DNA of 64,000 bases, from the NCBI RefSeq assembly GCF_006345805.1, contig NC_042999.1:86428001-86492000 (forward strand), given 5' to 3'. Source of the stretch: Octopus sinensis (lineage: Eukaryota). Of this stretch, positions 1,542 to 62,986 are shown piece by piece. Each line of letters begins with the position of its first letter. Within the stretch, counting starts at the first letter, position 1. Both the position numbers and the translations under genes were made by a program. The notes under the pieces were generated by a model that worked only from the letters and a program-made list of their open reading frames with translations, searched no databases and was not told the origin of the DNA.

Positions 1542-2830
1542 CGAGGGACGTTCAATAAGTAATGCCTCTGACCCACTTGCAGTTGTTTGATCTAGCTGAA
1601 ATTTTGCATGTGCAATCATTTATATCTCTATAGAGTAAGTGGCAAATTACAGCCCTAAATTAATTGTGGTTTTTGATTTACAGGTGTTGAACCGAGTCAA
1701 GTGTGAAATGGAGCCTGTTGAGTGTCGAGCAGTGATCCGGTTTTTGTATTTGAAAGGACGCACACCACGGGAGACTTTTGATGAAATGAAAGTAACTTAT
1801 GGTGATGATGCCCCATCATATGACCTTGTAAAACGCTGGCATCGTGAATTCAAACATGGTCGGAACTCTGTGGAAACAGCTCCCAGATCTGGTCGCCCCT
1901 TCTGCCATTGATGAGGCATCTGTCCGTCAAGTTGAGGCTGCCATTTTGGAAGATCGACGCATAATTATTCGCCAAATAGCCCATGAGGTCAAGATTAGCG
2001 CTGGGTCTGTGGAAACTATCATTCATGACCATTTGCATATGCAAAAGGTGTTTGCCAGATGGATTCCCAGGTTGCTCACGCCTTTCCAGAAGCAAGAACG
2101 CGTCAAGTGCTCGAGGGTGAATTTGGAGATGTGCCAAGAAGATGAGTCAAAATTTTTCAAAAGACTGATTACACAGGATGAAACCTGGGTTCATCATGAT
2201 GATCCAGAGACCAAAGCCCAGTCAATGCAGTGGAAGCACCGTGACTCACCCCCTCCAAAGGAGGCAAGGGTGCAGCCCTCCGCTGGCAAGGTCATGCTCA
2301 CAGTCTTCTGGGACCAGGACGGAGTAGTGATGACAGATTTCCTGGCAAAGGGTACCACAATTGCAGGAGCCTATTATGCTTCACTTTTGAGGAAATTAAG
2401 AGAAGTTATCAAAATCAAGAGGCGGGGCAAGATCAGCAAAGGCATCCTCCTCCTGCAGGACAACGCTCCGGTCCACAACTCGCTTGTCGCCAGATCAGAA
2501 GCACAGGCGTATGGCTATGAACTCCTCCCCCATCCCCCTACTTTCCTGACCTTGCACCCTCTGATTTTCACCTCTTCCCAGTCATGAAGTTGTTTTTGAA
2601 AGGAAAGCGTTTCCCAGATGATGCAGTCTTGATTTCTGAAGTCACGTTCAGGTTGGAGGACCAAGCTGGGGTCTTCTACAAAAACGGTCTCCAGAGCTGC
2701 ATCAAGCAATGGGAGAAATGCGTAACTCTGGGTGGTTCCTATGTAGAAAAAGACTAATAACTGTGCCAAGTTTCGTTGCTCTACTGCTATGGGAAGTGGG
2801 TCAGGGGCATTACTTATTGAACGCCCCTCG
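1542..2830 (+). mobile_element. Full-length mariner (DD34D) element with frameshifted transposase
   Basis: ~37-bp TIRs CGAGGGACGTTCAATAAGTAATGCCTCTGACCCACTT / AAGTGGGTCAGGGGCATTACTTATTGAACGCCCCTCG, TA on both sides; transposase pieces MEPVECRAVIRFLYLKG, WIPRLL, TQDETWVHH, LQDNAPVH and PDLAPSDFHLF in three frames. Confidence 0.95.
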
Positions 2831-5178: not shown

Positions 5179-7026
5179 GATTTATATAAAAATATACTCA
5201 TAAAATATCATTTAAGTGAACGATATATATATTTTTTTTATAGTATCAATGACATTAACGTTTCAGAAGCCTGTTTCAAGTGAAGTCATTGACACCTTAG
5301 TTTAATATGTACTTGTGTGTGTGTGTGTGTGTATGTGTGTGTGCGTGGGTGTGGGTGTGTGTGTGCATATGTATTTACATGCATATAATATTCTCAATAG
5401 ATTCAACTATATGCAATCTTTTTCATAGATTTATTTTAATTACGCTACAAGTCAAAAAGTCCGTTGTTAAGTAGCTTAATCGCTTACTTATCTCAACCAA
5501 AATTGATGTTTTCCTTTTTCAAAATTAAGAAATAGTGCTTTTTTTCTTTATAATTTGGAGGGCAGCATATGTTCAGAGTACACCGCTTCGAAGTCATGGA
5601 GTACCATTTGTTGTGTCAAGAGCAGATCTTTTAGCCCAAGACGGCAGGTGGTGACATAACAAACTGTCTGAACGTGAATACTCAGTCATGTCAAGTGCCC
5701 TTGAAATTAATAGTAACATAAATTGGTAAAGATTCTAAATTTAAAATTAATCCTCTATTCATTATATATTCAGTGCTTTACGTCTTAATATTAACAACTT
5801 GGTTCAACACTACGCACACATATAGGGACACATACACACACCCAAAGGTTACCTGCTTAAGGGAACATGGTGGAAGCATATACATACATGTGTACACAAA
5901 CACATATAATTAATAGCACCAAAATCAGTATTAATGCTATAAAAGACAATCTTTATTTCCTCCTTAACTTGGATGATGTGTCAGACCACAGAACACTGCG
6001 GTATTTACTGTGGAGAGGAGAGGATCTCACATATGAACTCGTGTTGCATAAAAGCACTTGTATTTATATCGTTGACATGCGAGAACTGCCAGATCACATG
6101 ATTTCGCTCTGTTTTGCGCTCCTCGGTGGCAGACATTCAGTAGCTACGTAACAGATAAATCTTGCATCCAAGATATGTAGGACATCAGTGTCTATTCAGG
6201 CACTGATGTCGCAAATAGGAAGCAAACTTATTAAAAAATAATTCATGGCGACAGAAGCAGAATTAATACCAAGAGGTAATCTTTATCACCGGCTTAATTA
6301 GGATGATGTGTTAGAACACAGAATACTGCATTATTTACTTTGAGAGAACTTCTTATGCACCACAAGTCCATATAAGAGGAAGTTGTGCAATGTCAACATT
6401 CACGCACTCTCACAGTTAGATAGATAGATACATACATACATATATACACACATACATACACAACAAGCTTCCAGCAGTTTCCGTCGAAACTATGGCAATT
6501 ATCTTGTACTAAAGCCCCGGACCGACCGATGCCTTGTGAATGAATTTGTTCGACGGAAAGTGCGTGGAAGCCTTCATGTGATTTTTATTTGAGTTTAAGT
6601 TCTTGTGAGTATTTCTAAAATGTTTTATAAAACTTCACTGTGAACTAATAGATTAAATTTGGAGAATCCATGTCAGTTTCCTTTACTTTTTCTTCGTGAA
6701 ACCGAGTATTGGTAAGTTTTTGTGCAAAGATTTTGGTACATAAACTAACGCACCTATGATGAGGAGTACAAATGAAAATTCATAGTCAGAGTACGCATTA
6801 GTTCATCCTTATTGTTATGTATGTATGTCATTATTTAGTTTTATTTCAAGATTTCTTACCAATAGGGAAAGAGTCGGTTTCTAACCTAGATCCAAAGTTC
6901 CTTTACTGGAATTTCAGCATCTACAACATGTATGTGTACGTGCAGATTTGTATGTTTTGTTTTATGTATGTCTTCTCATGCGTATACTTGCATATTTAGA
7001 CATGCTCATATGTATGTATGTATGTA

Positions 7027-17938: not shown

Positions 17939-18048
17939 ATATATATATATATGAGAATGAAAATAAACTCAAATTAGGTAATCAACTTTTTTTACATATA
18001 GTTATAAATTCGACTTAAAATACGTATATATATATGTATATATATATG

Positions 18049-18104
<56 letters not shown>

Positions 18105-18125
18105 TATGTGTATTATATATATGTG

Positions 18126-18177
<52 letters not shown>

Positions 18178-18183
18178 ATATTA

Positions 18184-18220
<37 letters not shown>

Positions 18221-18343
18221 ATTATTCACAATCAAGGAACGGCCATAATAGGCCATTCACCCACTAGAAATAACAGCCAAGCTTCAACCGCAAAATAACA
18301 TTAATTCCGTAACCAGGAAAAATTAAAAAACATTTACCCTGTA

Positions 18344-18451
18344 ATTTCTTATAACGATGCACCGTTTCATCTACTGTTTAATGGTAAACTAACCTGATTA
18401 AATTAAATCAAGCCAACTTCCCATAGGCCCTTAGATTCGTCAGTAAGAAAT
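18344..18451 (-). ncRNA. Type I hammerhead ribozyme, copy 1 (one extra base at the cleavage site)
   Basis: Minus strand ATTTCTTA-CTGACGA-ATCTA...TAGAT-GAAAC-GGTGCATC-GTTA-TAAGAAAT. Confidence 0.75.
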
Positions 18452-18823
18452 AGCCAGATCGGAACAGATATTTTCACGAGGCATTTCTGTCCTGCTTCGG
18501 CAAATATCTGACCTAAAATTTTCAAATCATCGCACTCGCGCCAATTTATCGGCAGCAAATAAATATAAGCCGCCGATTCATTACGGAATTAACCAGAAAA
18601 TTCATAATTAATCAATATAGGTGGCAAAAAATTTTGTAGAATTTTTTGCCACCGCGGCCTAGTGGGAAAAAATTAAATAGTCATAGACCATTTTTAAGTT
18701 CAACATCACAATCAAGGAACGGCATAATAGGCCATTCACCCACTAAAATAACAGCCAAAGCTTCAACCGCAAAATAACATTAATTCCGTAACCAGGAGAA
18801 AATTAAAAAACATTTACCCTGTA

Positions 18824-18927
18824 ATTTCTTATACGATGCACCGTTTCATCTACTGTTTAATGTAAACTAACCTGATTAATTAATCAAGCCAATCTTCCAT
18901 AGGCCCTTAGATTCGTCAGTAAGAAAT
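18824..18927 (-). ncRNA. Type I hammerhead ribozyme, copy 2 (intact; predicted GUA cleavage between 18832 and 18831)
   Basis: Minus strand ATTTCTTA-CTGACGA-ATCTA-[55 nt]-TAGAT-GAAAC-GGTGCATC-GTA-TAAGAAAT: 8-bp stem I, 5-bp stem II base, full conserved core. Confidence 0.9.
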
Positions 18928-19304
18928 AGCCAGATCGGAACAGATATTTTCACACGAGGCATTTCTGTCCCTGCCTCGGCAATATCTGACCTAAAATTTT
19001 CAAATCATCGCACTCGCGCCAATTTATCGGCAGCAAATAAATATAAGCCGCCGATTCCATTACGGAATTAACCAGAAAATTCATAATTAATCATATAGGG
19101 TGGCAAAAATTTGTAGAATTTTTTTTGCCACCAGCGGCCTAGTGGGAAAAAATTAAATAGTCATAGACCATTTTTAAGTTCAACATCACAATCAAGGAAC
19201 GGCCATAATGGCCATCACACCCACTAGAAATAACAGCCAAAGCTTCAACCGCAAAATAACATTATTCCGTAAACCAGGAGAAAATTAAAAAACATTACCC
19301 TGTA

Positions 19305-19411
19305 ATTTCTTATACGATGCACCGTTTCATCTACTGTTTAATGGTAAACTAACCTGATTAATTTAAATCAAGCCAATCTTCCATAGGCCCTTAGATTCGT
19401 CAGTAAGAAAT
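19305..19411 (-). ncRNA. Type I hammerhead ribozyme, copy 3 (intact; predicted cleavage between 19313 and 19312)
   Basis: Same architecture as copy 2; predicted cut sites 481 nt apart. Confidence 0.9.
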
Positions 19412-19717
19412 AGCCAGATCGTAACAGATATTTTGACGAGGCATTTCTGTCCCTGCCTCGGCAATATCTGACCTAAAATTTTCAAATCATCCGCACTCGC
19501 GCCAAATTTATCGCAGCAAGCAATTATAAGCCGCCGATTCCATTACGGAATATATATAAATATTATATATATATAATATATATATAATAATAATATATAT
19601 ATATATAAATATATATATATATTATATAAAATATTATTGAGACAAAACCACTATTTTGCAAAACAACAAGGAAAGACTTAATCAATACATAAAATTTAAT
19701 AATAGTCAAAAAAACCG

Positions 19718-19760
19718 CCACTACAATCGTTTCTTGTCTTGATCGACAATCTTCAGGTGG
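19718..19760 (-). ncRNA. Minimal type I hammerhead ribozyme in the PLE 3' end
   Basis: Minus strand CCAC-CTGAAGA-TTGTC-GATCAA-GACAA-GAAAC-GATT-GTA-GTGG. Confidence 0.8.
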
Positions 19761-22660
19761 ACTTCCAATCTAAAAAATCAAATTTTAAAATATAAAAATT
19801 ACTTTTAAATAATTAAAGTATAAATGAAAAAATATAAGTATATAATCCATATATAACCTATATATAATCCATATCGAAAATATAGACTAATTACCACGAA
19901 TTCCCTAAAAAAACCATGATAAAACAAAACTCTTAAAAACATATAACGATAAAATCTCCCTTTGCTAAACTCTATAACAAACCTATAAAGTAAACCCCCT
20001 AACCTAAACATTCACACACATACACACACGTAAACCACAGACTCACGACTTATACACATACCTATACTAACTTATAAACCTCAATATACACCAAAACCCA
20101 CTCCCTCCCCACACAGACAAATTACACATACATCCCAAAACCTAAATAACAAACCCATATACACATTCACACACAAACACACACTCACACGCAAAACACT
20201 CACACACAAAAGATACATATACTCCCTCACATATACGCCTATACATACTCACTAAACTCGACATATACAACACATACTTACACACCCACACAAAAACATT
20301 ATACATTTATGAGCTTTAACTCACCTTAGCATCTCTAACAAAACTTGCAGTAACCCAATCCCATTCTCTATGCCTACCTCACTACTACACTATTCCATTC
20401 ACATTCCAAGCAACGCTAGTCCACCACCCGTTATTCACGTGGCAAAACGAACACCACTCGAAAATTATGAATGAAACAATGTAAAAAAATAACCAACACC
20501 TAAAATAGACAAAATACCACGAATTACCTAAAAAAACCATGATAAACCAAAACTCATAAAGCATATAACGATAAAATCTCCCTTTGCTAAACCCTATAAC
20601 AAACTTATATAGCAATCCCCTAACCTAAACATTCACACACAAAAACCCACACGTAAACCACAGACCCAAGACTTATACACAAACCTATACTAACTTATAA
20701 ACCTCAATATACACCAAAAACCACTCCCTCCCCACACAGACAAATTAAACACATACATCCCAAATCCTAAATAACAAACCCAATACACATTCACACACAA
20801 ACACACACACACGCAAACACACACACACAACAGATACATATGCTCCCTCACATATACGCATATACATACTCACTAAAACTCGATATATACAACAATATTT
20901 ACACCCACACTCATACAGATAAATAAATTAATTACAATTAAAACTCACAACCAATCTCATATACATAAACACTCTTATGAAAACACAATAAATACATCGT
21001 AATTAACCAGAATATCAAAAATAACATTATGACATAAGGATAATCAAATACATACTTACAATTCAGTTACAATTATGAAGTGAAATTAGATTCTTAGCCG
21101 TTAAAAAACCAAACAAAATTACGTTACCATGGAAATAACTAATGTAAAAAAAGAATGCGCCATAGAAAGTAAACGTCATTCATAGTATGAATGGAAAATA
21201 TAATAAATGAACTAAAACTATTTCCACGTAGCAAACCAACGCTACTTAAAAAAATTTATTATGAATGGATTCTTTAAAAACTATCATGAAAATCAATTAT
21301 ATACATTTATGAGCTTTAGCTCACCCTAGCAACTCTAACAAACAACTTACAGTAACCCATACTCAATGCCTACCTCATTACCACCCTAATCCATTCACAA
21401 TTCCAAGCAACACTAGTCCACCACCCGGTTACAATTCCCAACTCTACCCATTCATTCACATTTCAACGACGTTCCCTTCAACAACTCTACATATAAGCCT
21501 CAACATTACACCGGAGATACACTTACACATCCGTACGGATGGGTGAGAGTATACATTAAGTGTAGTGATGGGGCTCCCATTTCTAACACATTTGTACCTG
21601 TGTGGTAGTCTCCATGTGTATATTCACGCACGGGTATAAATACAGGGGGTACACGTTCACTTCATTTACGTGTACCCCTCACATGTACATATGCATACTA
21701 TTTTGGCTCGATATATGCAACAATGTAATCGCGCCTATGTGTGAGCATTCACTGGTTGTGCAATTCACCTCTGGGTGTGATTGTGTGTAAACTTATCACT
21801 GTGGAGGTCGAGCTTGATACGTATATATTAGTGTGTATTAGGGGTTGTACGTACTAATTATGTTCATGTGCTTCACGCACTTGCGTCCATGTATGGAAGA
21901 ATATATTGGGATTACTATGTAGGTGTAATAGGGTATGGGGGAGTTTTGTCATTGTATGGGTGTGGGTTTCATTTGTGATGGTGGTTTAGTTGGTGATTAT
22001 TAGTATGTTCTGTATATTAGGGCTAGTATGTATTATTCAAGTGTGTATAATTGTATACATATAATTGGTGTGAATGGGATTACTCCCATTTTTTTTTTTT
22101 TTTTTTTTTTTATTATTATTTTTAGGGGATGTATGTGTTTATTTATCCATGTGGGGCTGGAGTGGCCGTTAGGTGCATATGCTGAGGCTCACATGCAAAC
22201 CAAGTACAACGAATGAAGTGGGCACTTATAATTGTTATGGGTGTGTACTTTATTATAAAAGACAATACCCAAATAAAATCTGTCAATTCAACATACAAAT
22301 AAAAAACAAAAAACAAAGGGATCTTAAACATTCACACATACATACAAAACTCAATAAAACACCACTAAATAACACCCAAAACATATAAATATATCCTCAA
22401 AATACATATAACAAATGCAAATAAAAATACATAATAAATAAAATAATAAAAATAAAAATAAAAAAATAAAAAAATCTAATATAAATTATTAAAGTTTTAA
22501 CGTACCATAAACTGCTAAATTAATATACATTAAAAATGAACTAATTAAAACAAAGAAATATCAATAAAGACTAACTATAATTAAATCCTAGACAACATAA
22601 CCAAATATATCATCTAAACTATTTAAACTAAACTAAAATAACCTAAAGGGAACTATATTG

Positions 22661-24083
22661 CTATTTATCATGAAACTTATTATATAAGTAAAGTAACTTG
22701 TGTCTACATTTTATTTTGCGCTCCTCCCCAGTATTAAGTAATTATCATACTTATAAATAAATTTCTTTAAACTCATTAGAGCATAAATAACAACAATTAG
22801 CTCCTATATTATATGATTTAGTTTTACAAATTATTTCCCATATTAAACTATAATTAATATTTAGTGAATTAAGACTCCAAATATACTTACTAAGTCCGGT
22901 TGAGTTGATTAAGTTTTATTTTAAAAGAATTCATATGTTGTGCAATTCTTGTTTTATTTTTGAGGAAGTAGAACCTATATAAACCGCTTTTGTGTAATTA
23001 TTATTCTTAAAGTTATTATCATGTATGTAACTATACATTTATACACTACATCGTTAATATCACAATTATTATTTAATATACATTAGATTTATCTCTACAT
23101 GTACAATTAATATAAGTCTTATCATTATTAATATTATTATCAAATAATTTCTTTTATAAAAATTATTCATTTATATTTATTAATGAAGAAATAATGTTAC
23201 CAACATTATTAGTGGTAGAGTAACCAACTCCAAAATTATTAAAAGAGAAAATGTTTCTATATTACGATTATCTCTAATAAATAGTTCTATAACATCTAAA
23301 ATCTCTTTAATAATATTCGTTTTAACTTGATCTCCATAAGGAACTATTAACCAAATTTTTATTCTTATTAACCTTATTATTATTATCATTATTATAAATA
23401 TATTTATAATTCTTTATTTTATTAAAATTATTATCAGAATTATATCTATGTACAGCATTTAAGGAATTATTATATTATTAAATTTATCAATATAATTATT
23501 ATAATAATTATTAAATTTATTTTATTTATATTATTCTTATTTATATTATTATTATTATATTTTATTATTATTTATTATTCTTATTTATATTTTTTATCAT
23601 TTTTATTATTTTTTTATAATATCTATTATTTTTACCACTAAACGTAACAAAATTATAATTATTATTAGAAGTATCTCGAAAATTATCATTTAAAATCATT
23701 ATCGCTAATATTATAAAATTTAATATTCTTATTATAACCTGCCCCTCTAAGGGCCTCATTATAATAATTAGCATGTTTATTAAAAATCTCTATATCATAA
23801 GAGAGTAATGAAATACGTTTACTTATATTATTAATCAACGATTTTTTAATAGAAAATGGGTGATTACTATTACATTTATATATCTAAGGTTCTCATTAAG
23901 TTTATGATATGGTTGTGTTTTACCTGTAATAAGATTAAAATTAACATCTAAATAATTAACATTATAATTCTCCTTATATATAGTAATACGTAAACCATAT
24001 CTTTTAAAGAAACTATATAGTTTTTTCTTATATACTTCTAGATTCCTATTAGTACAATTCTTTGTAACTAGTAGAAGATCGTC
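22661..24083 (-). pseudogene. PLE reverse transcriptase C-terminus, Asn-rich insert, Cys linker and GIY-YIG endonuclease, broken by single-base frameshifts
   Basis: Joined translation across frames: DDLLLVTKN...YLDVNFNL...NSNHPFSIKKSLINNISKRISLLS...YYNEALRGAGY...KIWLIVPYGDQVKTNIIKE...GYSTTNNVGNIISS...NCTCRDKS..C..VVYKC...VYIGST...NSTGLSKYIWSL...YSLIWEII...CCYLCSNE...CRHK. Confidence 0.9.
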
Positions 24084-25001
24084 TCAAGTCTTGGGTCTGT
24101 GGTTTACGTGTGGGTTTTTTGTGTGTGAATGTTTAGGTTAGGGGGATTGCTATATAAGTTTGTTATAGGGTTTAGCAAAGGGAGATTTTATCGTTATATG
24201 CTTTTATGAGTTTTGGTTTATCATGGTTTTTTTAGGTAATTCGTGGTATTTTGTCTATTTTAGGTGTTGGTTATTTTTTACATTGTTTCATTCATAATTT
24301 TCGAGTGGTGTTCGTTTTGCCACGTGAATAACCGGGTTGGACTAGCGTTGCTTGGAATGTGAATGGAATAGTGTAGTAGGAGGTAGGCATGAGATGGGGA
24401 TTGGGGTTACTGCAAGTTGTTTGTTGGAGAGATGCTAAGGTGAGTTAAAGCTCATAAATGTATATAATGTTTTTTGTGGGTGTAAGTATTTTGTATATTC
24501 GAGTTTAGTGAGTATTAGTAGCGTAATATGTGGGGAGTATATGTATCTTTTGTGTGTGAGTGTTTTGCGTGTGAGTGTGTGTTTTTGTGTGTGAATGTGT
24601 ATATGGGTTGTGTATTTAGGTTTTGGGATGTATGTGTTATTTGTCTGTGTGGGGAGGATGGGGTTTTGGTGTATATTGAGGTTTATAAGTTAGTATAGGT
24701 ATGTGTATAAGTCGTGAGTCGTGGTTTACGTGTGTGTATTTGTGTGTGAATGTTTAGTTAGGGGGTTTTACTTTATAGTTTGGTTATAGAGTTTAGCAAA
24801 GGGAGATTTTATCGTTATATGTTTTTAGATTTTGTTTTATCATGGTTTTTTTAGGGATTCGTGGTAATTAGTCTATATTTTCGATATGGATTATATATAG
24901 GTTATATATGGATTATATACTTATATTTTTTTCATTTATACTTTAATTATTTAAAAGTATTATTTTTATATTTGAAAATTTTGATTTTTTAGATTGGAAG
25001 T

Positions 25002-25042
25002 CCAACCTGAAGATTGTCGATCAGACGAAACGATTGTAGTGG
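25002..25042 (+). ncRNA. Minimal hammerhead in the inverted pLTR copy (small indels relative to the 19718 copy)
   Basis: CCAAC-CTGAAGA-TTGTC-GATCA-GAC-GAAAC-GATT-GTA-GTGG. Confidence 0.65.
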
Positions 25043-25214
25043 CGGTTTTTTGACTATTTATTAAATTTTATGTATTGATTAAGTCTTTCCTTGTTTGTTT
25101 TGCAAAATAGTGGTTTTTGTCTCAATAATATTTTATAATATTTTACTATAAAATTGGATTTAATCCTAAATCTGATTTTTTTTCCCTGTAAATTTGGATA
25201 TATTCCCGAATATT

Positions 25215-25590
25215 TATTATATATATATATATATTATATATATCATAAAATATATATATATATATATATATATTATATAAATATATATATATATAATAGA
25301 TAATATATATATATATCTATATATAATATTATATATATATAAAATATATATAAATATAATATATATATATATAGATATATATATATAAATATATATTATA
25401 ATAATATATATAAATATATATAATATATATTATATATATATATATAAATATATATAATATATATATATATATATATAAATATATATAAATATATATAAAG
25501 AATATATTAAATATATATAATATATATATATAATTATATAATATATATAATATAGATATATATAATTAAATTATATATATAATATAATAA

Positions 25591-25622
<32 letters not shown>

Positions 25623-25856
25623 TATATCTATATAATTATATATATATATATATAAATAAAATATATATATATAATATATATATACAATATATATTATATA
25701 TAAATATATATATAATATATTATATATATATATAATATAATATATATATAAATATATATATCTATATATAAATATATATATATTATATAAATATATATTT
25801 ATAATATATATATATAATATATATATATATATAATATATATATATATTATATAAAT

Positions 25857-25926
<70 letters not shown>

Positions 25927-26076
25927 ATATATACATATAATATAAATCTATATATTTATATATATATTTTTAGTAGAAGAAATAGCTATAACCCTTTGAC
26001 TGCTATTTCTAAATTCGGTATGTGGTAGGCAACTCGTTGCTAAACCCTTATTGCTTAGTATAAAATATATATATAA

Positions 26077-26115
<39 letters not shown>

Positions 26116-26573
26116 CATATATATACTAATATATATATATATATATAGATATTATAAATATATATATTATATATATAAATATCATATACGTATATATATA
26201 ATATATATATATAATATAAATATCATATATAGATATATATATATATATTATATAATAGAATATATATTATATACATAATGATATATATATATATGATATA
26301 TATATATATTATATATATATAGATCTATAAATATATACATATAGTAAATATATATATATAATAACTATATATATTATATATATATAGTTTTTTTAGTAGA
26401 AGAAATAGCTATAACCTTTGACTGCTATTTCTAAATTCGGTATTGGTAGGGGCAACTCGTTTCTAAACCCTTATTGCTTAGTATAAATATATATATATAT
26501 ATATATAAAATATATATATAAATATATATATAATATAAATATATATATATATATAAATCTATATATAAATATC

Positions 26574-26611
<38 letters not shown>

Positions 26612-26928
26612 ATAATATAAATATATATAATATATATATATAATATATATATAAATATATAATATATATAAATATATATATATATATAAATATATTATAT
26701 ATAAATATAATATCTATATATAGAATATATACATATATATAAATATTATATATAAAATTACTATTATATATATATAAATATATATATATATAAATATATA
26801 TATTATATATATATATATAAATATATATAAATATATTATATATATTATATAATATATATATATATAGAATATATATAAATATATATCTATATATATAAAA
26901 TATATATATATATATAAATATATATATA

Positions 26929-26964
<36 letters not shown>

Positions 26965-26982
26965 CTATAAATATATATATAT

Positions 26983-27015
<33 letters not shown>

Positions 27016-27055
27016 ACAATTATATATAAATATATATATATATATATACATAACA
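25215..27055. repeat. Long degenerate (TA)n tract containing two copies of a ~95-bp unit
   Basis: Nearly pure AT; unit at 25967-26064 and 26388-26487. Confidence 0.95.
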
Positions 27056-27056
27056 A

Positions 27057-27344
27057 TACATGTAAAGAATCCATGTGGGATATATATATAGAAAAAAGTG
27101 TGAGAAAAAGAGAACTGGTAAGAATTTTTTCGTACTAAAATTAAGAACGGTTAAGAATTCCAATTAAAAGATGTATTATATACCATTTGTATATTTTTTA
27201 AAAAGCATTGAATTTTATGGTTCTTTTATAATTGGAACTCTTAACTGCTCTTAATTTTAGTACGAAAAAAGTTTTTTTTTACCAGTTCTCTTTTTCTCAC
27301 ACTTTTTCCCATATATATCCCACATGGATTCTATTTACATGTAT
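27057..27344. mobile_element. Foldback/MITE-like element with ~110-bp inverted arms
   Basis: ATACATGTAAAGAATCCATGTGGGATAT...GAATTCCAATTA and TAATTGGAACTC...ATATCCCACATGGATTCTATTTACATGTAT, ~62-bp spacer. Confidence 0.8.
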
Positions 27345-27349
27345 TTTTA

Positions 27350-27380
<31 letters not shown>

Positions 27381-29529
27381 TAAAATATTCATACGTGTCG
27401 ATATGTATGATCATATACATATATATATATACGTATTTTAAGTTGAATTTATAACCGTATGAGTATGTAAAAAAGTTGATTGACTAATTTGAGTTTATAT
27501 TTTAATTCTTATCTTTTGTCTCGGTTTCGACCCAAGCACTTCTTAATCAGTTCTATATATTTCGTAAGAAAAAATAATATTATATGTGTGTGTGTATGCA
27601 TGCATTTTGTTATCTACATTGCAACGATGGAGCTTTGTATCTTTATTAGAAACCAGTTCCGTCCTCAGAGTAAAAATTTAACTAATTAAAAACAGAAGAG
27701 AACATATATGTATATCACTGTATCACCCAAACTATCGAATGTTCCAAGGACCCACTGAACGTTCCTACATTTTGAAATAGATGAAAAATTAAAGAACACT
27801 GCATGAAAGGAAGGTGTGAATTTTGAGAAAATAGTAATCCAGATATAATAGATTCCTTGAGTGTGAAGGATTAAAATTAACCTGTCCGATTGTTAACGAG
27901 TAATATGATTGTTGGAGAATAGTTAAGCAGTCTCAGTTGGATATTACTTTTGTTTGTGAAACAATGATATTTGCTCATCTTTTTAAACCTCTAATAGTCT
28001 TATTCAAGGTGGGGAAATAATTTTAAAATACTTACATACACTAAAATGATAATTTTTTTAAAAGTTTTTTTTCACTCAAACATCTCATTTGAATGAATCT
28101 AGAAAAAAAAATCACTGATAAAAAAGATTATGGCGGAGTTTCTTGGTGGCGTCGGCTGAAATATTCATCTTAGTCACCAGCATTAGAAAATACTGAATAT
28201 GCATGTCATGTTACGATACTATCTAAAATGTTTCCAATCTGTACATCTCATGTATTGTCAATAAATGACTGACAAAATGTTTTTGTTTCATTGTCTTACT
28301 CTACTTAAGAAACGGAATCAAAGTGTACAAGTCTATACTGTAAGTAAATAACGGGTTTAGAATATGCCTTGCTTTGTTACTTTAATTGTTTATAATATTT
28401 AAATAAAACGATACTATTTTCCTGTGACTTCTTTTCCGAGCAGCATTCGAACAACCCTTCAAAATTACAGCATTAAAATACTAAAGACAAATTTACGAAA
28501 CTTGAACGATACTCATTAGATATCTCGTATTTGTCCATTATGGTATCAAACAATATGCCAATCGTTAAAATAATCTCATACGCAGTACTTTTAAGCACTA
28601 ACAAATGTTTAAGACAATACAATTGAACAGAACTATACAAATCATTCGTGATTTATGCAAAATTCTTCTGTGATGGAATTAAAGTCTATAAAAATTATGA
28701 AAATGAACAGCAGATATTCTTCTAAAATATATTCTGGCCATATCAAATTGTTCAACTTTTGACAAAAGTATGCCCAGCACATAAAACACGACGACCTTTA
28801 AACGTCTCACATAAACTATGCTTTCTTCTTAAAGATTTATTAACAACTTATGGCGACAATTATCAACTAGCATCTATTCATATAACTGAAATCCCACCCC
28901 TTCCTAGGGAAAACAAATAAGGATATATCAAAAGAAGTTCAGCCGTTGACCTTTTCTCTATCAAATGCAGATGACTCTTGAAAATTTTGGAGAAAGGTCA
29001 ACATCTGATCTTGCCTTTTTTTATAGACTTTGGCGCAGTAGTTACACTTTGTCTTAAGAAGTCAACCATAACTGAGCACTTAGAATTGCCATCTTCTTTC
29101 CGGTCATGCTTTCTTAGCATGCTCCAAATGAAGAAATATTAAATACTCATCCCCATCCCGTTAATACAAACGCTGACCAGCCTGTTCATAAATATTATTT
29201 ATTCATGGTTTAAAATAGCTCAACAGAACCTCTAACATTTGTTTCCATATTATTACATTACTGTAACGATTGGTTAATTAACAACTAAGTCAATATCTTA
29301 TGTATGTTACATTAATTCTTTAAAATAAACTCAGAAAACAATCAATGGCTATAATGGATGCTTGGAGCTATAAAAGCTACAATGAAGTCACTTTAACACT
29401 TATATATATATATTAAAATATATTTATAAAAGAACATTAATGCTCATGAGAGATATTAATGTTATATATATATATATATATATCTTCAGCATCATCAACA
29501 CTGTATGTAGCGTTTATCTTTAATTCTAC

Positions 29530-34788: not shown

Positions 34789-36040
34789 TTGGGTTGAGGA
34801 ATAATTAATGAGCATTTTTATCAAAAGTTAAAAATACACGCAGAAATATAACGCATTGGCAAAATGTTTTGTGTCATTTAAAAGAAAATTTTTGGTCTAC
34901 AAGATAGTGTGTTTTGACTTTGTAATTTTATTGATTTTTGTGTATTTTCAGATCAAGTGGACAAAACTGAGCATTTTCGACACCATTTGCTTTTTGCATT
35001 TAGTCGAGGTGTTAAAGCCACCGAAGCTGCCCGTGAGATTTGTACTGTTTATAGAGAAGGAGCAATGCCTCAAAGTACCGCCCGCCGTTGGTTTTCGCAC
35101 GTCAAAAATGGGATTTTTGACCTCAAGGAAGGATCACACACCAGTCGACGAATTGAGTTCGGTGAAGAACGATTGAATCAACTTCTTCACGAAAATCCAC
35201 ATCAAACGACCAGAGAATTGGCAGAGCAGATGGATTGAGATAAAAAAAAAAAAACTGTGATGAACCACCTTCACTCAATGGGCAAGGTTCAGAAACTCGG
35301 CGCTTGAGTAAAAATAACAAAAGTCAACGCTCCACAATCGCCGTCAGTTTGCTCGCTCGACATCGCACAACACATGGTCACAAAGAGCGTTTTCTTTACT
35401 GCATTGTCACTGGCGATGAAAGATTGTGCCTTTACGTCAATATGAAGCAGCGAAAAGAATGGCTCAGTCGTGATAAACAAGTGACTCCGCGAGCAAAACA
35501 AGACCTTCATCCTCGAAAGACCATGTTGTGTGTATGGTTGTATTGGGAAGGCATAATTCATTACGAACTGCTTGAGTGCAACCAAACGCTCAATGCAGAT
35601 CTTTACGTTCAACAACTGCATCAACTCAACGAAGCAATTCAGCAAAAATGACCGAAATGGCGTTCTTCTGCAACACGACAATGCCCGTCCTCACATCGCC
35701 AATATGACCAAAGGCGCGATTCGAGAACTCGAATGGGAAGTGCTGCCTCATACTCCATACTCTCCAGATATGGCGCCGTCAGACTTTCATCTCTTTCGAC
35801 TGCTTTCAAGCACTTTACGCAGTGTATCGTTCAATAATGACGTGGAATTGAGGGCTTGGTTGGACGAATTCTTTGAGTCAAGACCGGGAGATTTCTATCA
35901 CCGAGGCATCGAAAAACTTATTCAACGATGGGATGAAGTCGTAAACAGCAACGGAGAGTATATTATTGATTAATTTGTTGTAGTTGTTTTTGTTTAAAAT
36001 ATATTTGAAAAATATGCTCATAAATTATTCCTCAACCTAA
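34789..36040 (+). mobile_element. Mariner (DD34D) element, transposase disrupted
   Basis: TIRs TTGGGTTGAGGAATAATTAATGAGCAT / ATGCTCATAAATTATTCCTCAACCTAA; MDKTEHFRHHLLFAF, TGDERLCLY, HDNARPH, PYSPDMAPSDFHLF. Confidence 0.93.
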
Positions 36041-36601
36041 CAGCAGAACTCAAAGCAATTCAAAGAAGCTACACAAAGAAGATCGTCTCAATGCAAAATA
36101 TCAGCTACTGGGAAAGACTGAAAGTATTAAACCTCTTCTCCCTAGAGCGAAGGCGAGAGAGATATGCGGTGATATACATCTGGAAAATCCTGGAGGGTCT
36201 TGTCCCAAACTTTGGCATTCAAAGTTACCCCAACCGCAGAACGGGGCGCCACTGGATGGTGCCAAAGATTCCAACATCACCATCAAAATACAGGTCCAGA
36301 TACTGCAACAGCTTGGGTTTCAGAGGACCACAGCTCTTTAACATCGTCCATAAATGCCTGAGAGACTTACATGGTGTGGATGTGGGTTTCTTTAAAACTA
36401 AACTGGATCTCTTCTTGTCGGGGGTGCCAGATGAACCTACCTCACGACAGGAGACACAGATGCGGGCAGCGGCATCGAACTCCCTTGTTAATCAAGTGCC
36501 ACGTATCAGAGGTGGATTCACATACTAGTGTAGCTCATTCAGCGGTGGTGCCCCAGCGTGGCCGCGGCCTTCGGGCTAAAACATTTTTAAGGATTTAAGG
36601 A
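36041..36601 (+). mobile_element. CR1/L2-group LINE 3' fragment
   Basis: SYWERLKVLNLFSLERRRERYAVIYIWKIL...FKTKLDLFLSGVPDEP, then a short tail ending TTTAAGGATTTAAGGA. Confidence 0.8.
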
Positions 36602-39937: not shown

Positions 39938-41941
39938 ATGTTTGTTAACCTTTGCTTGGAGAAGTGGCACCACCACCACCACAGATGTATAATAAAAATG
40001 GAGTCCAATGAAATGGAAGAGAGCGACCAGTATAACAACAATAACACGACTACCTGTACGGTAAGCAGTCCTTTGCTTTTTAGAAATGGCAACACTCACT
40101 CAACAAATAGGCGAGAAGAAAACAAAAGCAGTCCTTACAATCTATCGAATAACTCTAAGCTTTCTAGTCGAACCAATGTTGAAAGTAATTCTTATTCACA
40201 ATGCGATCCTGAAATTCGAACTGAATCTCGTCGTTGTTCTTCTGAAAGTATTCGACCATCATCTGCTTCTCTCCACCAAACATCACATTCTGAAGTACTT
40301 TTGCATCCTACCGGTAAAAGTAGCAGCAGCAGTAGTAGTAACTCGAAGCATCACAGCCACCGTAACCATCACCAATCTCTCTACAGTAGCCGTCACCATC
40401 ATAGCCATCGTAAACACTACAGTCGTTACAAAAATAACCGTAGTCCTAACTATCAGACGTCTCAACAATTCGATGAAAACATCCAAATGATAACCAGCCA
40501 CGGACGACGATCGACGGATAACTACCTGTATAACAAAAGTAGTCGAAGTCATAACAATAATACAGTCACCAATAACACAAGTTGTTGCAGTAGTAGCAGT
40601 GATTGTGGCATTGGCGGCAACTCCGTCAAGGTTTCTCCGAGACTTTCTTCCTCAGACTCTAATTCCAATGACAATAGTCCAAGCCCCAACTTATCTCCAG
40701 CACCTACTTCAGCCATAACATCACCACTTCCGCCTCCGTCTCCCCCAACAAAGTCTGGAGAGCACGTCCATTGTTTGTTTCCCGAGTTATTGGTAATGAT
40801 ATTCTGCTATTTAGACGTGAGGAACAAAGGCCGTGTGGCCCAAGTATGTAGTCGCTGGCGGGATGCTGCCTATTCTCGCACTGTGTGGCGTGGAGTTGAA
40901 GCTAAAATTCATCTTCGTCGATCAAACCCTTCTTTATTCCGTAGCCTTGCCAAACGTGGAATTCGCAGAATTCAAATTCTGAGCTTAAAACGAAGTCTCC
41001 GTGATGTTGTAGCCGGCATTCCAGACTTAGAAAGTCTTAACCTTAGTGGATGTTACAGTATCACCGATGCTGGTCTAGGCCAAGCACTTCTATACCGGTT
41101 GCCTTTGGTTAGTGAACTTAATCTCAGCCTGTGCAAGCAGACAACAGACTACAGCCTCAGCCGGATTGCTATGTATCTAAAAAATTTAAAAGTATTACAT
41201 TTAGGTGGTTGTTCTCTAATAACGAATGCAGGTTTGTTTGTTATTTCCTATGGATTAGTCAACTTGCAATCACTTGATTTGAGAAGCTGTCGATATCTTT
41301 CAGATCAAGGGATTGCTTACTTGGCAGGACTTGGTAATGAGATAACTACACAAGGTAACTTAGCTCTTGAACATCTTTGTTTACAGGACTGTCAGAAACT
41401 TACGGACCAATCACTGCACTATATGAGTCTTGGGTTGAAAAGTTTACTTAAAGTGAACCTTAGCTTTTGTGGTGGGGTCACTGACGCAGGACTGCAGTAT
41501 TTGGCTAAAATGCCCAGCCTACGTGAAATTAACCTTGCCAGCTGTGATTTAGTGACTGACACTGGACTTGCACATTTGGCACGTGGAGGCTCACATATAA
41601 CATCTTTGGATGTGAGCTTTTGTGATAAAATTGGAGATGGAGGCTTGAGCCGTTTGGCTGAAGGACTCTTTAAACTCGAATGCCTCAGTTTGAGTGCATG
41701 CAACATCAGTGACACTGGTATTAGCTATATTACACAGAATATGCATGGTTTAACCACATTAAATATTGGTCAGTGTCATCGTATTACCGATCGAGCACTG
41801 AATCTTATAGCAGACAATCTGAAAAAACTGTCAAGTATGGACCTCTATGGTTGCACACAAATATCTGCAAAAGGTCTTGAAAGGATTATGCAGTTACCGA
41901 GTTTATCCAGTTTAAATTTGGGTTTATGGCACAAACGGTGA
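39938..41941 (+). CDS. FBXL14: F-box/LRR protein 14 (Partner of paired-like), single exon; start may be the ATG at 39998
   Basis: 667-aa ORF; F-box HVHCLFPELLVMIFCYLDVRNKGRVAQVCSRWRDAAY followed by VWRGVEAKIHLRR, about 11 cysteine-containing LRRs (LNLSGCYSITD, LSFCGGVTD, LNIGQCHRITD), C-terminal LNLGLWHKR. Confidence 0.96.
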   Translation: MFVNLCLEKWHHHHHRCIIKMESNEMEESDQYNNNNTTTCTVSSPLLFRNGNTHSTNRREENKSSPYNLSNNSKLSSRTNVESNSYSQCDPEIRTESRRCSSESIRPSSASLHQTSHSEVLLHPTGKSSSSSSSNSKHHSHRNHHQSLYSSRHHHSHRKHYSRYKNNRSPNYQTSQQFDENIQMITSHGRRSTDNYLYNKSSRSHNNNTVTNNTSCCSSSSDCGIGGNSVKVSPRLSSSDSNSNDNSPSPNLSPAPTSAITSPLPPPSPPTKSGEHVHCLFPELLVMIFCYLDVRNKGRVAQVCSRWRDAAYSRTVWRGVEAKIHLRRSNPSLFRSLAKRGIRRIQILSLKRSLRDVVAGIPDLESLNLSGCYSITDAGLGQALLYRLPLVSELNLSLCKQTTDYSLSRIAMYLKNLKVLHLGGCSLITNAGLFVISYGLVNLQSLDLRSCRYLSDQGIAYLAGLGNEITTQGNLALEHLCLQDCQKLTDQSLHYMSLGLKSLLKVNLSFCGGVTDAGLQYLAKMPSLREINLASCDLVTDTGLAHLARGGSHITSLDVSFCDKIGDGGLSRLAEGLFKLECLSLSACNISDTGISYITQNMHGLTTLNIGQCHRITDRALNLIADNLKKLSSMDLYGCTQISAKGLERIMQLPSLSSLNLGLWHKR

Positions 41942-50307: not shown

Positions 50308-51588
50308 TTTGGTTGTCCAGAAAGTTTGTGACGATTTTTAAAGAAAGCAAAAGGTCAATAAATACTTGCCATTACATTTTTAATCCACCAAATATGAACC
50401 ATTTTGTTGCACAATGCGTCTCCATCTTTCCTTTAACTTGAAAATATCCTCTTCCCAGAATTGAGGTGGTTCCATAGCAAAGAATTCATCAAGGTATCTT
50501 TTTATGTCATCCAAGGCATTGAGATTTTTACCATTAAGACTATTCTGCAGAGACCTGAATAAGTGGAAATCCGAAGGAGCAATATCTGGTGAATACGGAG
50601 GGTGGGGTAACACATCCCAGCTGAGCTGTAGCAATTTTTGTCTGGTTCCCAAAGAAACGTGCAGTTTTGCATTATCATGTTGGAAAACAACACTCTTCCT
50701 GTTGGCCAATTCTGGACGTTTCTCTTGAATTGCTGCTTCTAACTCATCCAGTTGTGTGCAGTATTTCTCAGAATTAATTGTCTGGTTACTTGGGAGAAGC
50801 TCATAGTACAGAATTCCTTTCCAATCCTACCAGACACAAAGCAAGACTTTTTTAGGGTGAAGACCCGCTTTTGGGGTGGTTAAGGGTGGCTCATGTTGCT
50901 TAGTCCAGGATCGCTTTCTCTGAACATTTCGGTAGATAATCCATTTCTCATCACCTGTCACAATTTGCTTTAAAAAAGGCACGTTTTCATTCCATTTATA
51001 AAGTGAATCACAGATGGAAATGTGATCCAAAAGGTTCTTCTCACTCAACTCATGTGGTACCCAAACATTGTAGCAATTTGTGTACCCAAGCTTCACCAGG
51101 TGCTCATGAACGACGGATTTTGATAGGTTGAGGTTTTCTGCCAATTCTCGGGTTGTGCAATGTGGGTTATTCTAAATGAATGACTTGATTTGGTCATCAT
51201 CTGTAGTGGATGGTCTGCCTGATTGCTCTTTATCAATAAGGCTACAATCTCCAGCTTGGAACCTTGCGAACCACTTCTGTACAGCTCTTTCGGATAAAGA
51301 AACATCACCATAAACTGTGCATATTTCTTTGGTTGCTTGTGAGGCATTTTCCCTTTATGGAAAAAGAAAAGCATCAAGTGCTGAAAATGAACTTTCTTAT
51401 CTTCCATTTTAAAGGGTTACAGAATTAACACAGATTATAGGAACATAAACCTTCTTCCTTGAAAAGATAGCTTAACTGTGCTCTAAATGGAGGTGTAGTC
51501 AAATCCTATTTTATGGCCTCAACCATGTTCTAAAATAAGTCGAAAGGTAAGCTACTATAAATCGGCACGAACTTTCTGGACAACCCAA
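50308..51588 (-). mobile_element. Full-length mariner (DD34D) element, transposase disrupted
   Basis: TIRs TTTGGTTGTCCAGAAAGTT / AACTTTCTGGACAACCCAA with TA flanks; MEDKKVHF, WVPHEL, TGDEKWI, HDNAKLH, PYSPDIAPSDFHLF. Confidence 0.93.
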
Positions 51589-56830: not shown

Positions 56831-58014
56831 TGCCAACTCCCTGAGAATTATGTTAAGGGTATACGTGTCAGTGGAGTGCTCAACCACTTGCATGTTAATT
56901 TTATGAGCATGGTGTGTTGTTGATTGAATCAACTGGAATATTTGTCATTGTAACTGATGTACAGCAGGAGCTGGACCTTACAAGCAGAGATAACATACTC
57001 CAGTGTTTCTGCCAATTTATATGAACATATGTTGAGTGAATGGAGAAAGCATGAGTCGGCACATTGCTTCAGTGAAGTGATTATATTTCCAGTCTGTCCT
57101 TTCCTATTCTAAGGTAATAGGGCTTGAGTTAAAGAAAATATGGCTGCTATTTCTAACAGGTATGCAAGTTCTTTACCTTTTTGACACAAAGTAAACTTAC
57201 TTGTTGTGTAGTCCCAGAGCAGTCATGATAATAACAAAATTATATTGTTTGATGTAACTTATTTATCTCCATCAAGTGATTTGTGAGATATATAGCTGCA
57301 GTTTTGAGGTGGTCAAATAGTTGTGTGTTTGGTAGTTTGATGAATGAAAACAAACTCACCTGCCATTGAGTCACACACATGCACACACACACACACACTC
57401 TCTCTCTCTGTGCCTCTTTCCCTTTCTCTTCATAGATCATAAGGTTGTTGAAGTGAGTGAGGTAATTGTTGTTTGGAGCAGTGTGATGTTTAATTTAACA
57501 ACAGAAGCTGATAGCATGGTGTTATGCAGTGCATTGTGTAAACATTGCGGACATTAACTCCTTAGCATTTTATCTGGTTGTAAGCAGCCCAAATATTCTA
57601 TCCATTTTGTGTTCAAACCAGCCAGATATAGCCTCTCACACCTAGCTTATGATAACATTCTAAAAATGAACAATTATGTCATTGAAATCTCACAGGTTAA
57701 AGATAATGTAAGATAAGCCATTTCTGTTTAAATACAATCAGAAATACCGAGAAATTTTCAGTGACTCATTTATTATTTTTCAGTGTTCAAAGTGGAGACA
57801 AATTTTGTTTTTTGTAATTACCAATATAACTTCAGGATGTAGGAGTTCTGAGTTTGAAAGAATTATACTCGAAGACTAAAGCCTTGTGAGCAGATTTTGT
57901 AGATGGAAACTGAAAGAAGCCCATCATATGCATGTGTGTGTGTGTGTATGTTTTGTTTCTCCTTGTTTTGACATCATGTAAATGTTGTAAATGAATCTCA
58001 TCAATTTCAAATAT

Positions 58015-59620
58015 TGTGTGACACTTGTGAAGACCTGTTGAGGCAAGTGAAAATCAAATCAAACCAAATCAAAATAGATGAACATCAATGGAATTTGTAT
58101 CTTTGTGGTTCCAGTACCGGTGGCACACAAGAAAAACCATCCGAACGTGGCCGTAGCCAGTACCGCATCGACTGGCCTCCGTGCTGTGGGCACAACAAAC
58201 ACCATCTGATCGTGGCCGTTCACCAGCCTCATCTGGCACCTGTGTCGGTGGCACATAAAAACACCATCCGAAGACCCGGCGACGTAGTCAGTCCACCTGT
58301 GCATACCTTCCTACTTATGACACTTGTGAAGACCTGTTGAGGCAAGTGTGTGACACCTACTTATGACACTTGTGAAGACCTGTTGAGGCAAGTGTGTGAC
58401 ACTTGTGTAGACCTGTTGAGGCAAGTGAAAATCAAATCAAATCAAACCAAATCAAAATAGATGAACATCAATGGAATTTGTATCTTTGTGGTACCAGTAC
58501 CGTTGGCACACAAGAAAACCATCCGAACGTGGCCGTAGCCAGTACCGCATCGACTGGCCTCTGTGACGTGGGCACATAACAAACACCATCCGATCGTGGC
58601 CGTTCGCCAGCCTCATCTGGCACCTGTGTCGGTGGCACATAAAAACACCAACCGAAGACCCGGCAAGACTAGTCAGGCCATAACCCGTGGCCCCTACTTG
58701 GGACGTAGTCAGTCCCCTGTGCATACCTTCCTTCCTTCCTGTGACACTTGTGAAGACCTGTGAAGACCTGTTGAGGCAAGTGAAAATCAAATCAAATCAA
58801 ATCAAAATAGATGAACATCAATGGAATTTGTATCTTTGTGGTACCAGTGCCGGTGGCACACAAGAAAACCATCCGAACGTGGCCGTAGCCAGTACCGCAT
58901 CGACTGGCCTCCGTGCTGTGGGCACGTAACAAACACCATCCGATCGTGGCCGTTCGCCAGCCTCATCTGGCACCTGTGTCGGTGGCACATAAAAACACCA
59001 TCCGAAGACCCGGCAAGACTAGTCAGGCCATAACCCGTGGCCCCTACCTGGGACGTAGTCAGTCCACCTGTGCATACCTTCCTTCTTGTGACACTTGTGA
59101 AGACCTGTTGAGGCAAGTGAAAATCAAATCAAAACAAATCAAAATAGATGAACATCAATGGAATTTGTATCTTTGTGGTACCAGTGCCGATCATCCGAAC
59201 GTGGCCGTAGCCAGTACCGCATTGACTGGCCTCCGTGCTTTGGGGACGTAACAAACACCATCCGATCGTGGCCGTCCGCCAGCCTCATCTGGCACCTGTG
59301 TCGGTGGCACATAAAAACACCATCCGAGCGTGGCCGTCTGCCAGCCTCGTCTGGCACCTGTGTCGGTGGCACATAAAAACACCATCCGAGCGTGGCCGTT
59401 CGCCAGCCTCGTCTGGCACCTGTGTCGGTGGCACATAAAATCACCCACTACACTCTCGGAGTGGTTGGCGTTAGGAAGGGCATCCAGCTGTAGAAACACT
59501 GCCAGATCTGACTGGCCTGGTGCAGCCTTCGGGCTCCCCAGACCCCAGTTGAACCGTCCAACCCATGCTAGCATGGAAAACGGACGCTAAATGATGATGA
59601 TGATGATGATGATGATGCAA
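58015..59620 (+). repeat. Hierarchical tandem array of family D 5' part (four ~350-370-bp units) ending in one RTE-like tail
   Basis: GTGACACTTGTGAAGACCTGTTGAGGCAAGTGAAAATCAAATC recurs at about 58018, 58395, 58741 and 59087; ~57-bp subrepeats at 59260-59440; single tail plus (GAT)n at 59440-59617. Confidence 0.9.
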
Positions 59621-62935: not shown

Positions 62936-62986
62936 TACATTACAATCCACCACATGGGGACAACCCAAATTCCTCTTTTCTGTTAC

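Follow-up and report, generated by a model that had tools for sequence, protein, structure and literature searches.

A candidate non-LTR retrozyme with type I hammerhead motifs in a (TA)n-rich locus of an Octopus genome

Is a short non-coding tandem repeat in an octopus genome a retrozyme? This question is raised by a 64-kb stretch of DNA from an Octopus species (64,000 nucleotides; hereafter the window), in which a unit of about 480 nucleotides (nt) is repeated head to tail between (TA)n microsatellites and one strand carries hammerhead ribozyme motifs. The initial annotation of the window had read this array as a retrozyme without long terminal repeats (LTRs), and our analysis supports that reading at the level of a candidate: the array is likely to be a non-autonomous non-LTR retrozyme. 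All retrozyme features that can be examined in silico were found, namely type I hammerheads on the same strand, non-coding units with a guanine-plus-cytosine (GC) content of 36.7%, a self-paired monomer, a palindromic loop 3, (TA)n at the insertion site and a Penelope-like neighbour.

We delimited the array with Tandem Repeats Finder (TRF), which reported positions 18226-19551 with a period of 479, 2.8 copies, 94% matches and 4% insertions or deletions (indels), by far the highest-scoring long-period array in the window. Alignment of the copies resolved 2.75 head-to-tail units of ~480 nt (479-481 nt), arranged as follows.

18226-19551, minus strand: tandem array of 2.75 units (TRF, blastn of the unit against the window, alignment)
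18226-18705, minus strand: copy 1 (alignment)
18706-19185, minus strand: copy 2 (alignment)
19186-19551, minus strand: copy 3, partial (alignment)
18025-18220, no strand assigned: (TA)n flank on the 3' side of the array in the minus sense (TRF)
19550-19628, no strand assigned: (TA)n spacer between the array and an upstream element with a minimal hammerhead (TRF)

The array neither starts nor stops at the cleavage site predicted below: counted from that site, its two ends correspond to about positions 243 and 126 of the unit, and both lie directly in (TA)n. The flanks are thus microsatellite and not LTRs; no search was made for primer-binding-site (PBS) or polypurine-tract (PPT) motifs. The longest stop-free stretch of the unit is 63 aa in any frame, and the unit has no Pfam match. 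The TRF results and the scan for open reading frames (ORFs) and Pfam domains bear out the earlier description of a 480-bp tandem in 2.75 copies, free of ORFs and bordered by (TA)n on both sides. No ORF was found in the array or in the region at 19.6-25.1 kb, and hence no reverse transcriptase (RT) or GIY-YIG endonuclease ORF of an autonomous Penelope-like element is present there, which is why we regard the array as non-autonomous. The copies diverge from one another by 5-6%. Most of the differences are 1-nt indels, which is also the case in an inverted pair of elements at 19629-20674 and 24086-25133. These 1-nt indels may in part be consensus noise in repeats, in which case 94% identity could overstate the age of the copies.

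In the minus sense, the sequence of copies 2 and 3 is ATTTCTTA-CTGACGA-ATCTA-(55-58 nt)-TAGAT-GAAAC-GGTGCATC-GTA-TAAGAAAT, an exact match to the motif given in the initial annotation. In the RNA sense this becomes AUUUCUUA / CUGACGA / AUCUA-(55 or 58 nt)-UAGAU / GAAA / (A)CGG-UGCA-UCG(U) / A / UAAGAAAU, which contains the full hammerhead core (C3-A9, G12-A14, A15.1-U16.1, and A at H17, giving GUA). This is a type I topology, in which helix I is the open one and the other two helices are closed. A descriptor scan assigned 8, 5 and 4 bp to helices I, II and III, respectively, and a palindromic UGCA to loop 3. The sequence and the constrained fold agree with the stem I proposed earlier, in which 8 perfect pairs are extended by CUG/CAG across a small internal loop. 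The predicted spacing of 481 nt between cuts was likewise recovered, with A17 at 19313 and 18832.

19305-19411, minus strand: type I hammerhead of copy 3, with a 58-nt insert; predicted cut 19313/19312 (descriptor scan, constrained fold)
18824-18927, minus strand: type I hammerhead of copy 2, with a 55-nt insert at 18853-18907; predicted cut 18832/18831 (descriptor scan, fold)
18344-18451, minus strand: hammerhead of copy 1, bulged in helix III or at the cleavage site; predicted cut 18352/18351 (alignment; Rfam Hammerhead_1, 14.6 bits)

The claim that every unit carries a complete hammerhead holds for copies 2 and 3 and needs qualification for copy 1, which retains the core and helices I and II intact but has one extra U (CGTTATAAG; also written CGUUAUAAG) and fits only with a bulged U in helix III. 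The stems described as closed also call for a distinction. Stem III is closed as stated, whereas stem II is closed not by a small loop but by the 55-58 nt insert, which has a hairpin of its own: the 5-bp helix II is followed by an internal loop and then by a hairpin with a 14-bp stem rich in G-U pairs. Helix I opens after 8 bp and helix II after 5 bp, and no canonical loop nucleotides can be assigned. The fold constrained to the hammerhead lies merely 2.1 kcal/mol above the minimum free energy (MFE). For the helix III strand ACGGUGCAUCGU, a 12-bp self-duplex was calculated at -17.5 kcal/mol versus -0.2 kcal/mol for the hairpin, and this difference makes a double-hammerhead mode between neighbouring units plausible. 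Such a dimer mode has been described for newt hammerheads and for those of Penelope-like elements (PMC4209133, PMC6155905).

We evaluated the chance occurrence of such motifs with an RNAmotif-like descriptor comprising CUGANGA, GAAA, a UH cleavage site and three helices, applied to both strands. The descriptor recovered the two perfect array motifs in the real window. With helices I, II and III set to at least 6, 4 and 3 bp, it found none in 200 randomised 64-kb windows generated by a first-order Markov model (25.6 Mb); at the looser setting of at least 4, 3 and 2 bp, the expectation was 0.05 per random window. In addition to Rfam, we used a custom covariance model of 44 positions, R1, built from four cleavage-validated retrozyme hammerheads (Supplementary Table 2 of PMC7229834).

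The two perfect motifs and the motif of copy 1 delimit the RNAs that self-cleavage would release.

18832-19312, minus strand: predicted 481-nt monomer, a putative circular RNA (between two predicted cuts)
18352-18831, minus strand: would-be second monomer (between predicted cuts)

Closure of the predicted monomer would join ...CAUCGUA to UAAGAAAU. The 481-nt monomer folds with an MFE of -138.4 kcal/mol, z-scores of -3.7 to -3.9 and 147 pairs, and retrozyme RNAs have been described as highly self-paired (PMC7229834). The plus strand of the monomer is also structured (z -5.0). We rejected strand assignment by folding z-scores, as both strands are significant, and it is thus the ribozyme alone that assigns a strand to the array.

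How does this array compare with known hammerhead-bearing repeats? Validated retrozyme ribozymes from coral, mussel and axolotl (two) share CUGANGA ... GAAAC ... GUH, a U1.1-A2.1 pair and a palindromic loop 3 (PMC7229834), and the octopus motif agrees with them in every one of these points. The closest parallel by phylum is provided by the non-LTR retrozymes of the mussel Mytilus galloprovincialis (Cervera & de la Pena 2020, PMC7229834), which are non-coding AT-rich tandems whose units each contain a single type I hammerhead, all on one strand. They also resemble the octopus array in their short helix III with a palindromic loop, their self-paired monomer and their coexistence with Penelope-like elements carrying atypical hammerheads; they have no canonical loop 1-loop 2 nucleotides, and none can be assigned in the octopus motif. 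The mussel units differ in their length of 350-390 bp, in a helix II of 4 bp that ends in a 5-nt loop, and in having a G10.1-C11.1 pair and GUC at the cleavage site, whereas the octopus array combines a 480-nt unit with a 55-58 nt helix II hairpin, an A-U 10.1-11.1 pair, GUA and an 8-bp helix I. By eye, with no alignment run, we saw no sequence similarity between the octopus and mussel units. Cleavage and circles have been demonstrated for the mussel, whereas both are predictions for the octopus array.

The axolotl retrozyme Rtz_353, with its ribozyme HHR_Amex2 (PMC7229834), shares GUA with the octopus motif and also has a non-G-C pair at 10.1-11.1 (a U-U mismatch); it differs in coming from a vertebrate, in its 350-bp unit, in its small loop 2 and in being represented by ~60,000 motifs. 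Plant LTR retrozymes (PMC4918200) are alike in their proposed life cycle, in which a non-coding hammerhead RNA is circularised and mobilised by an autonomous retroelement. They carry type III hammerheads in LTRs, together with a PBS and a PPT, have a GC content above 55% and 4-bp target-site duplications, and use Gypsy-type helpers; the octopus array, by contrast, has a type I hammerhead, 36.7% GC and (TA)n flanks in place of LTRs. Hammerhead satellites are known from newts, Schistosoma (Sm-alpha) and Dolichopoda cave crickets (pDo500) (PMC6155905). These differ from the octopus array in belonging to other phyla, in that their loops 1 and 2 are small and canonical and make tertiary contacts, and in that their cleavage has been demonstrated by experiment. 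A unit of ~500 bp is not unprecedented, this being the approximate length of the Dolichopoda pDo500 unit. The initial annotation had regarded the octopus monomer as unusually large; this was not borne out, since a 2026 survey gives consensus lengths of 51-972 bp for non-LTR retrozymes, with a mean of 650 bp in ray-finned fish.

A second kind of hammerhead lies next to the array, within a non-coding element that is present twice.

19629-20674, minus strand: copy A, a non-coding element with an internal 623-bp duplication, in the same orientation as the array (blastn)
19718-19760, minus strand: minimal 43-nt type I hammerhead of copy A, ccacCUGAAGAuugucGAUCAAgacaaGAAacGAUUguAgugg (descriptor; R1)
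24086-25133, plus strand: copy B, the same element as copy A, inverted (blastn)
~25003-25045, plus strand: minimal hammerhead of copy B (R1 match at 25005-25040)

Copies A and B form a head-to-head inverted pair, are 94% identical over 1070 bp (blastn) and enclose ~3.4 kb of AT-rich sequence. Copy A lies 77 bp upstream of the array on the same strand, across the (TA)n spacer. In both copies the minimal hammerhead is located ~89 nt from the 3' end, which abuts (TA)n in copy A and is followed in copy B by ~76 nt of unique sequence and then by a 1.8-kb (AT)n tract at 25210-27052. The motif consists of CUGAAGA / GAAAC / GUA with helices of 4, 5 and 2 bp. R1 scored it at 14.0 bits in copy A (E 0.12, rank 2 in the window) and at 11.4 bits in copy B, where the motif is nearly identical but for small indels in helix II; Rfam gave no match for the 43-nt motif. 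The copy A/B element has no ORF and hence no RT or endonuclease (EN) ORF. We also observed that the 623-bp duplication of the copy A element is direct, lies within 19879-20910, is ~91% identical and is GT-rich on the minus strand, and that a piece of ~130 bp occurs three times, at 20300-20430, 21300-21427 and 24329-24468.

Penelope-like elements, which have been reported in cephalopods, insert preferentially into (TA)n and do so in tandem as well as in inverted arrangements (PMC8557442). Their insertions and minimal hammerheads are recognised by a short helix I and a tiny helix III, by copies that occupy opposite strands, by partners that are inverted and 5'-truncated, and by targets of (TA)n (PMC8557442, PMC4209133). 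Judged against these hallmarks, the arrangement of copies A and B is the architecture published for Penelope-like insertions. In comparison with the minimal hammerheads of Penelope-like elements (Cervera & de la Pena 2014, PMC4209133), the 43-nt motif is alike in its 4-bp helix I and tiny helix III, in its location near the 3' end of a repeated element, and in the opposite-strand copies and (TA)n targets. It differs in having neither G10.1-C11.1 nor an unpaired base between positions 9 and 10.1, in its helix II of 5 bp as opposed to 7-8 bp, and in having no associated RT or EN ORF. Retrozymes and Penelope-like elements with minimal hammerheads have been reported to coexist in molluscs and other animals.

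A further Penelope-like trace is found near the other end of the window.

62605-62877, minus strand: 5'-truncated Penelope-like GIY-YIG endonuclease fragment, a 90-aa ORF (Pfam GIY-YIG, 22.6 bits)

This ORF ends in a stop codon followed by a non-coding tail, and a second, inverted copy of its initial ~100 nt is located at ~62235-62390. Both ends of the locus (62235-62960) lie in (TA)n. Its sequence indicates a 5'-truncated canonical Penelope-like element and is independent evidence that such elements have inserted into microsatellites of this genome. A hammerhead was looked for in the 3' region of the fragment and not found. A search for its relatives returned a single database match, a 134-aa protein with 51% identity on a 702-nt contig. 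As to the microsatellites themselves, positions 22000-28000 form a very AT-rich block (GC 0.17-0.21) that includes the 1.8-kb (AT)n tract. This block and the (TA)n runs at 17.9-19.6 kb make up one large microsatellite domain holding all of the hammerhead-bearing insertions.

If the array is a retrozyme, its life cycle can be outlined by analogy with the systems above. The minus strand would be transcribed through the array. Each unit would adopt the type I hammerhead fold, whether by itself or together with a neighbouring unit, in which case the self-complementary helix III strands ACGGUGCAUCGU of the two would join them into a double hammerhead. A cut after GUA would then release ~480-nt monomers with a 5'-OH and a 2',3'-cyclic phosphate, which an RtcB-type tRNA ligase could close into highly base-paired circular RNAs. 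A Penelope-like element would supply the reverse transcriptase and the GIY-YIG endonuclease; the enzyme would nick a (TA)n microsatellite, where the circle would be copied by rolling-circle, target-primed reverse transcription. Rolling-circle copying into nicked (TA)n would produce an insert such as the one seen here, with 2.75 units, ends inside the unit rather than at the cleavage site, and microsatellite flanks.

Several observations weigh against a retrozyme. The initial annotation had proposed a check with hammerhead covariance models, and this fell below threshold. No Rfam family reached its gathering score anywhere in the window. Hammerhead_1 (RF00163, clan CL00010) matched copy 1 only, with 14.6 bits against a threshold of 34, in an alignment that adopts exactly the proposed helices and pays for ~57 inserted loop 2 bases; copies 2 and 3 were unlisted, copy 2 even in a 141-nt search. 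R1 did not recover the array motifs and aligned no more than their 5' half, with scores of 3-6 bits, probably because a small-loop model is unable to reach across the loop 2 insertion, so that this failure carries little information. Within the motif, the usually conserved G-C pair at 10.1-11.1 is A-U, helix II is weak (four A-U pairs and one G-C), and the replacement of loop 2 by the 55-58 nt hairpin leaves the canonical loop 1-loop 2 contact, which is associated with activity at physiological Mg2+, not evident. When one unit was compared with the window by blastn, the three array copies were found and no other significant match, and this one locus in the window supports neither covariation nor mobility. 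Any target-site duplication is masked by the (TA)n microsatellite.

The same observations can be read as signs of a dead relic or an ordinary satellite, in which a unit derived from some hammerhead-bearing element, its ribozyme now nonfunctional, was multiplied to 2.75 copies at the DNA level, whether by duplication or by unequal crossing-over, within an unstable microsatellite and without retrotransposition of a circular RNA. The atypical 10.1-11.1 pair, the weak helix II and disrupted loop 2, the sub-threshold covariance scores, the extra U at the cleavage site of copy 1, the presence of just three copies and the repeat-rich, unstable surroundings at 17.9-27 kb all fit this explanation, which we nevertheless consider unlikely. 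Despite 5-6% divergence, 11 of 11 core nucleotides and three helices are intact in two copies and nearly so in the third, and the ends of the array lie inside the unit and directly in (TA)n, as target-primed insertion predicts. Moreover, a validated retrozyme ribozyme likewise does without G10.1-C11.1: HHR_Amex2 cleaves 22% in 1 h as a monomer and far more as a dimer (PMC7229834), and the missing G-C pair in the octopus motif is therefore not disqualifying.

Proximity to copy A raises a different explanation, in which the adjacent minimal-hammerhead sequences belong to a degraded Penelope-like element and the array is the terminal part (pseudo-LTR) of that element in reiterated form. Penelope-like elements do form partial tandems and carry hammerheads in their pseudo-LTRs (PMC8557442, PMC4209133), a 2026 preprint derives non-LTR retrozymes from pseudo-LTRs, and the array is on the same strand as the minimal-hammerhead element, 77 bp from its 3' end. 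We consider this origin very improbable, however, given that blastn shows no similarity of the 480-nt unit to either the adjacent element or the GIY-YIG fragment, that a microsatellite separates the array from that element, that the 3' end of copy B has no such array, and that the two hammerheads differ in architecture. It is more improbable still that a hammerhead-like motif arose by chance in an ordinary tandem repeat or that the triplication is an assembly artefact. The covariance models lend no support at threshold, and copy differences that are largely 1-nt indels could be consensus noise; against this, 25.6 Mb of random sequence contained no comparable motif, and the copies differ from each other, so the array is not a simple duplicated contig end. 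The nearby 647-codon FBXL14 ORF is intact and without frameshift, which indicates that the assembly is accurate at least in unique sequence.

Under the retrozyme reading that we favour, the array is probably an unreported family, and its only distinctive trait is the expanded helix II. Among the papers searched, none except a survey of Penelope-like elements connects octopus or other cephalopods with hammerheads or retrozymes. A bolder version of this reading is that the motif is an active hammerhead of undescribed architecture (an expanded, structured loop 2, A-U at 10.1-11.1 and an 8-bp helix I) that uses a different helix I-II contact or an obligate dimer mode and belongs to a cephalopod-specific family beside its Penelope-like partner; we put it forward as a doubtful extension, which, if true, would offer a natural locus for dissecting Penelope-like rolling-circle retrotransposition into (TA)n. 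Confirmation of the array as a retrozyme would extend hammerhead retrozymes to cephalopods, whose genomes are repeat-rich and whose RNA biology is intensely studied, and would add a ribozyme variant with a large structured helix II insertion. Within 8 kb it brings together the retrozyme array, a Penelope-like element with a minimal hammerhead and the (TA)n target common to both, and the locus is therefore convenient for testing the link between retrozymes and Penelope-like elements. It leaves the current picture unchanged, because the wide occurrence of retrozymes among invertebrates, molluscs included, is already established.

Searches for relatives of the repeat were made at several levels. 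A word-index search of its translated stop-free frames against predicted proteins returned nothing. We discarded the results of an exhaustive HMMER search with translated frames, which yielded unrelated repetitive proteins only, with scores inflated by their own repeats. A metagenome scan with the motif pattern gave a sole match, in the 2.8-kb contig Ga0210307_1053494, which we rejected as chance, since it lies inside an apparent protein-kinase gene (by eye). This contig starts with C4A4 telomere repeats, which mark it as a ciliate nanochromosome, and is unrelated to the array.

The best R1 match in the window lies elsewhere, at 6086-6132 on the minus strand (18.8 bits, rough E 0.005), and reads CUGCCA-CCGAGGA-GCGC..GAGC-GAAA-UCAUGUGAU-C-UGGCAG. 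This motif has complete hammerhead architecture but carries C in place of U4, which should inactivate it. It is located between direct repeats of ~110 nt at 5906-6017 and 6238-6347 that are 76% identical and 332 nt apart, and may be a decayed older retrozyme dimer or a chance occurrence.

The remaining features of the window include one intact gene and several repeat remnants. At 39998-41941 on the plus strand, we identified an intact single-exon FBXL14-like gene encoding an F-box protein with leucine-rich repeats (647 aa). It is 97% identical to the Octopus bimaculoides protein A0A0L8FPT6, which agrees with the earlier suggestion that the DNA is from a cephalopod; the differences are substitutions, mostly in the disordered N-terminal part. 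The host is accordingly an Octopus species closely related to O. bimaculoides but probably distinct from it. Three frameshifted remnants of mariner/Mos1-type transposases (Pfam HTH_48, Transposase_1) are present at 1639-2587 (plus), 34957-35973 (plus) and 50380-51407 (minus). A segment at 58000-59600 on the minus strand has a GC content of 0.48 and several overlapping ORFs of 100-127 aa, without a Pfam match, that share the peptide ...MCHRHRCQMRLANGHDRMVFV...MRYWLRPRSDG...; it contains a 62-bp tandem repeat at 59253-59445 and is probably another repeat family. Finally, an ORF of 145 aa at 36091-36528 on the plus strand (LNLFSLERRRERYAVIYIWKI) has no Pfam match and resembles the C-terminal region of the ORF2 proteins of non-LTR retrotransposons.

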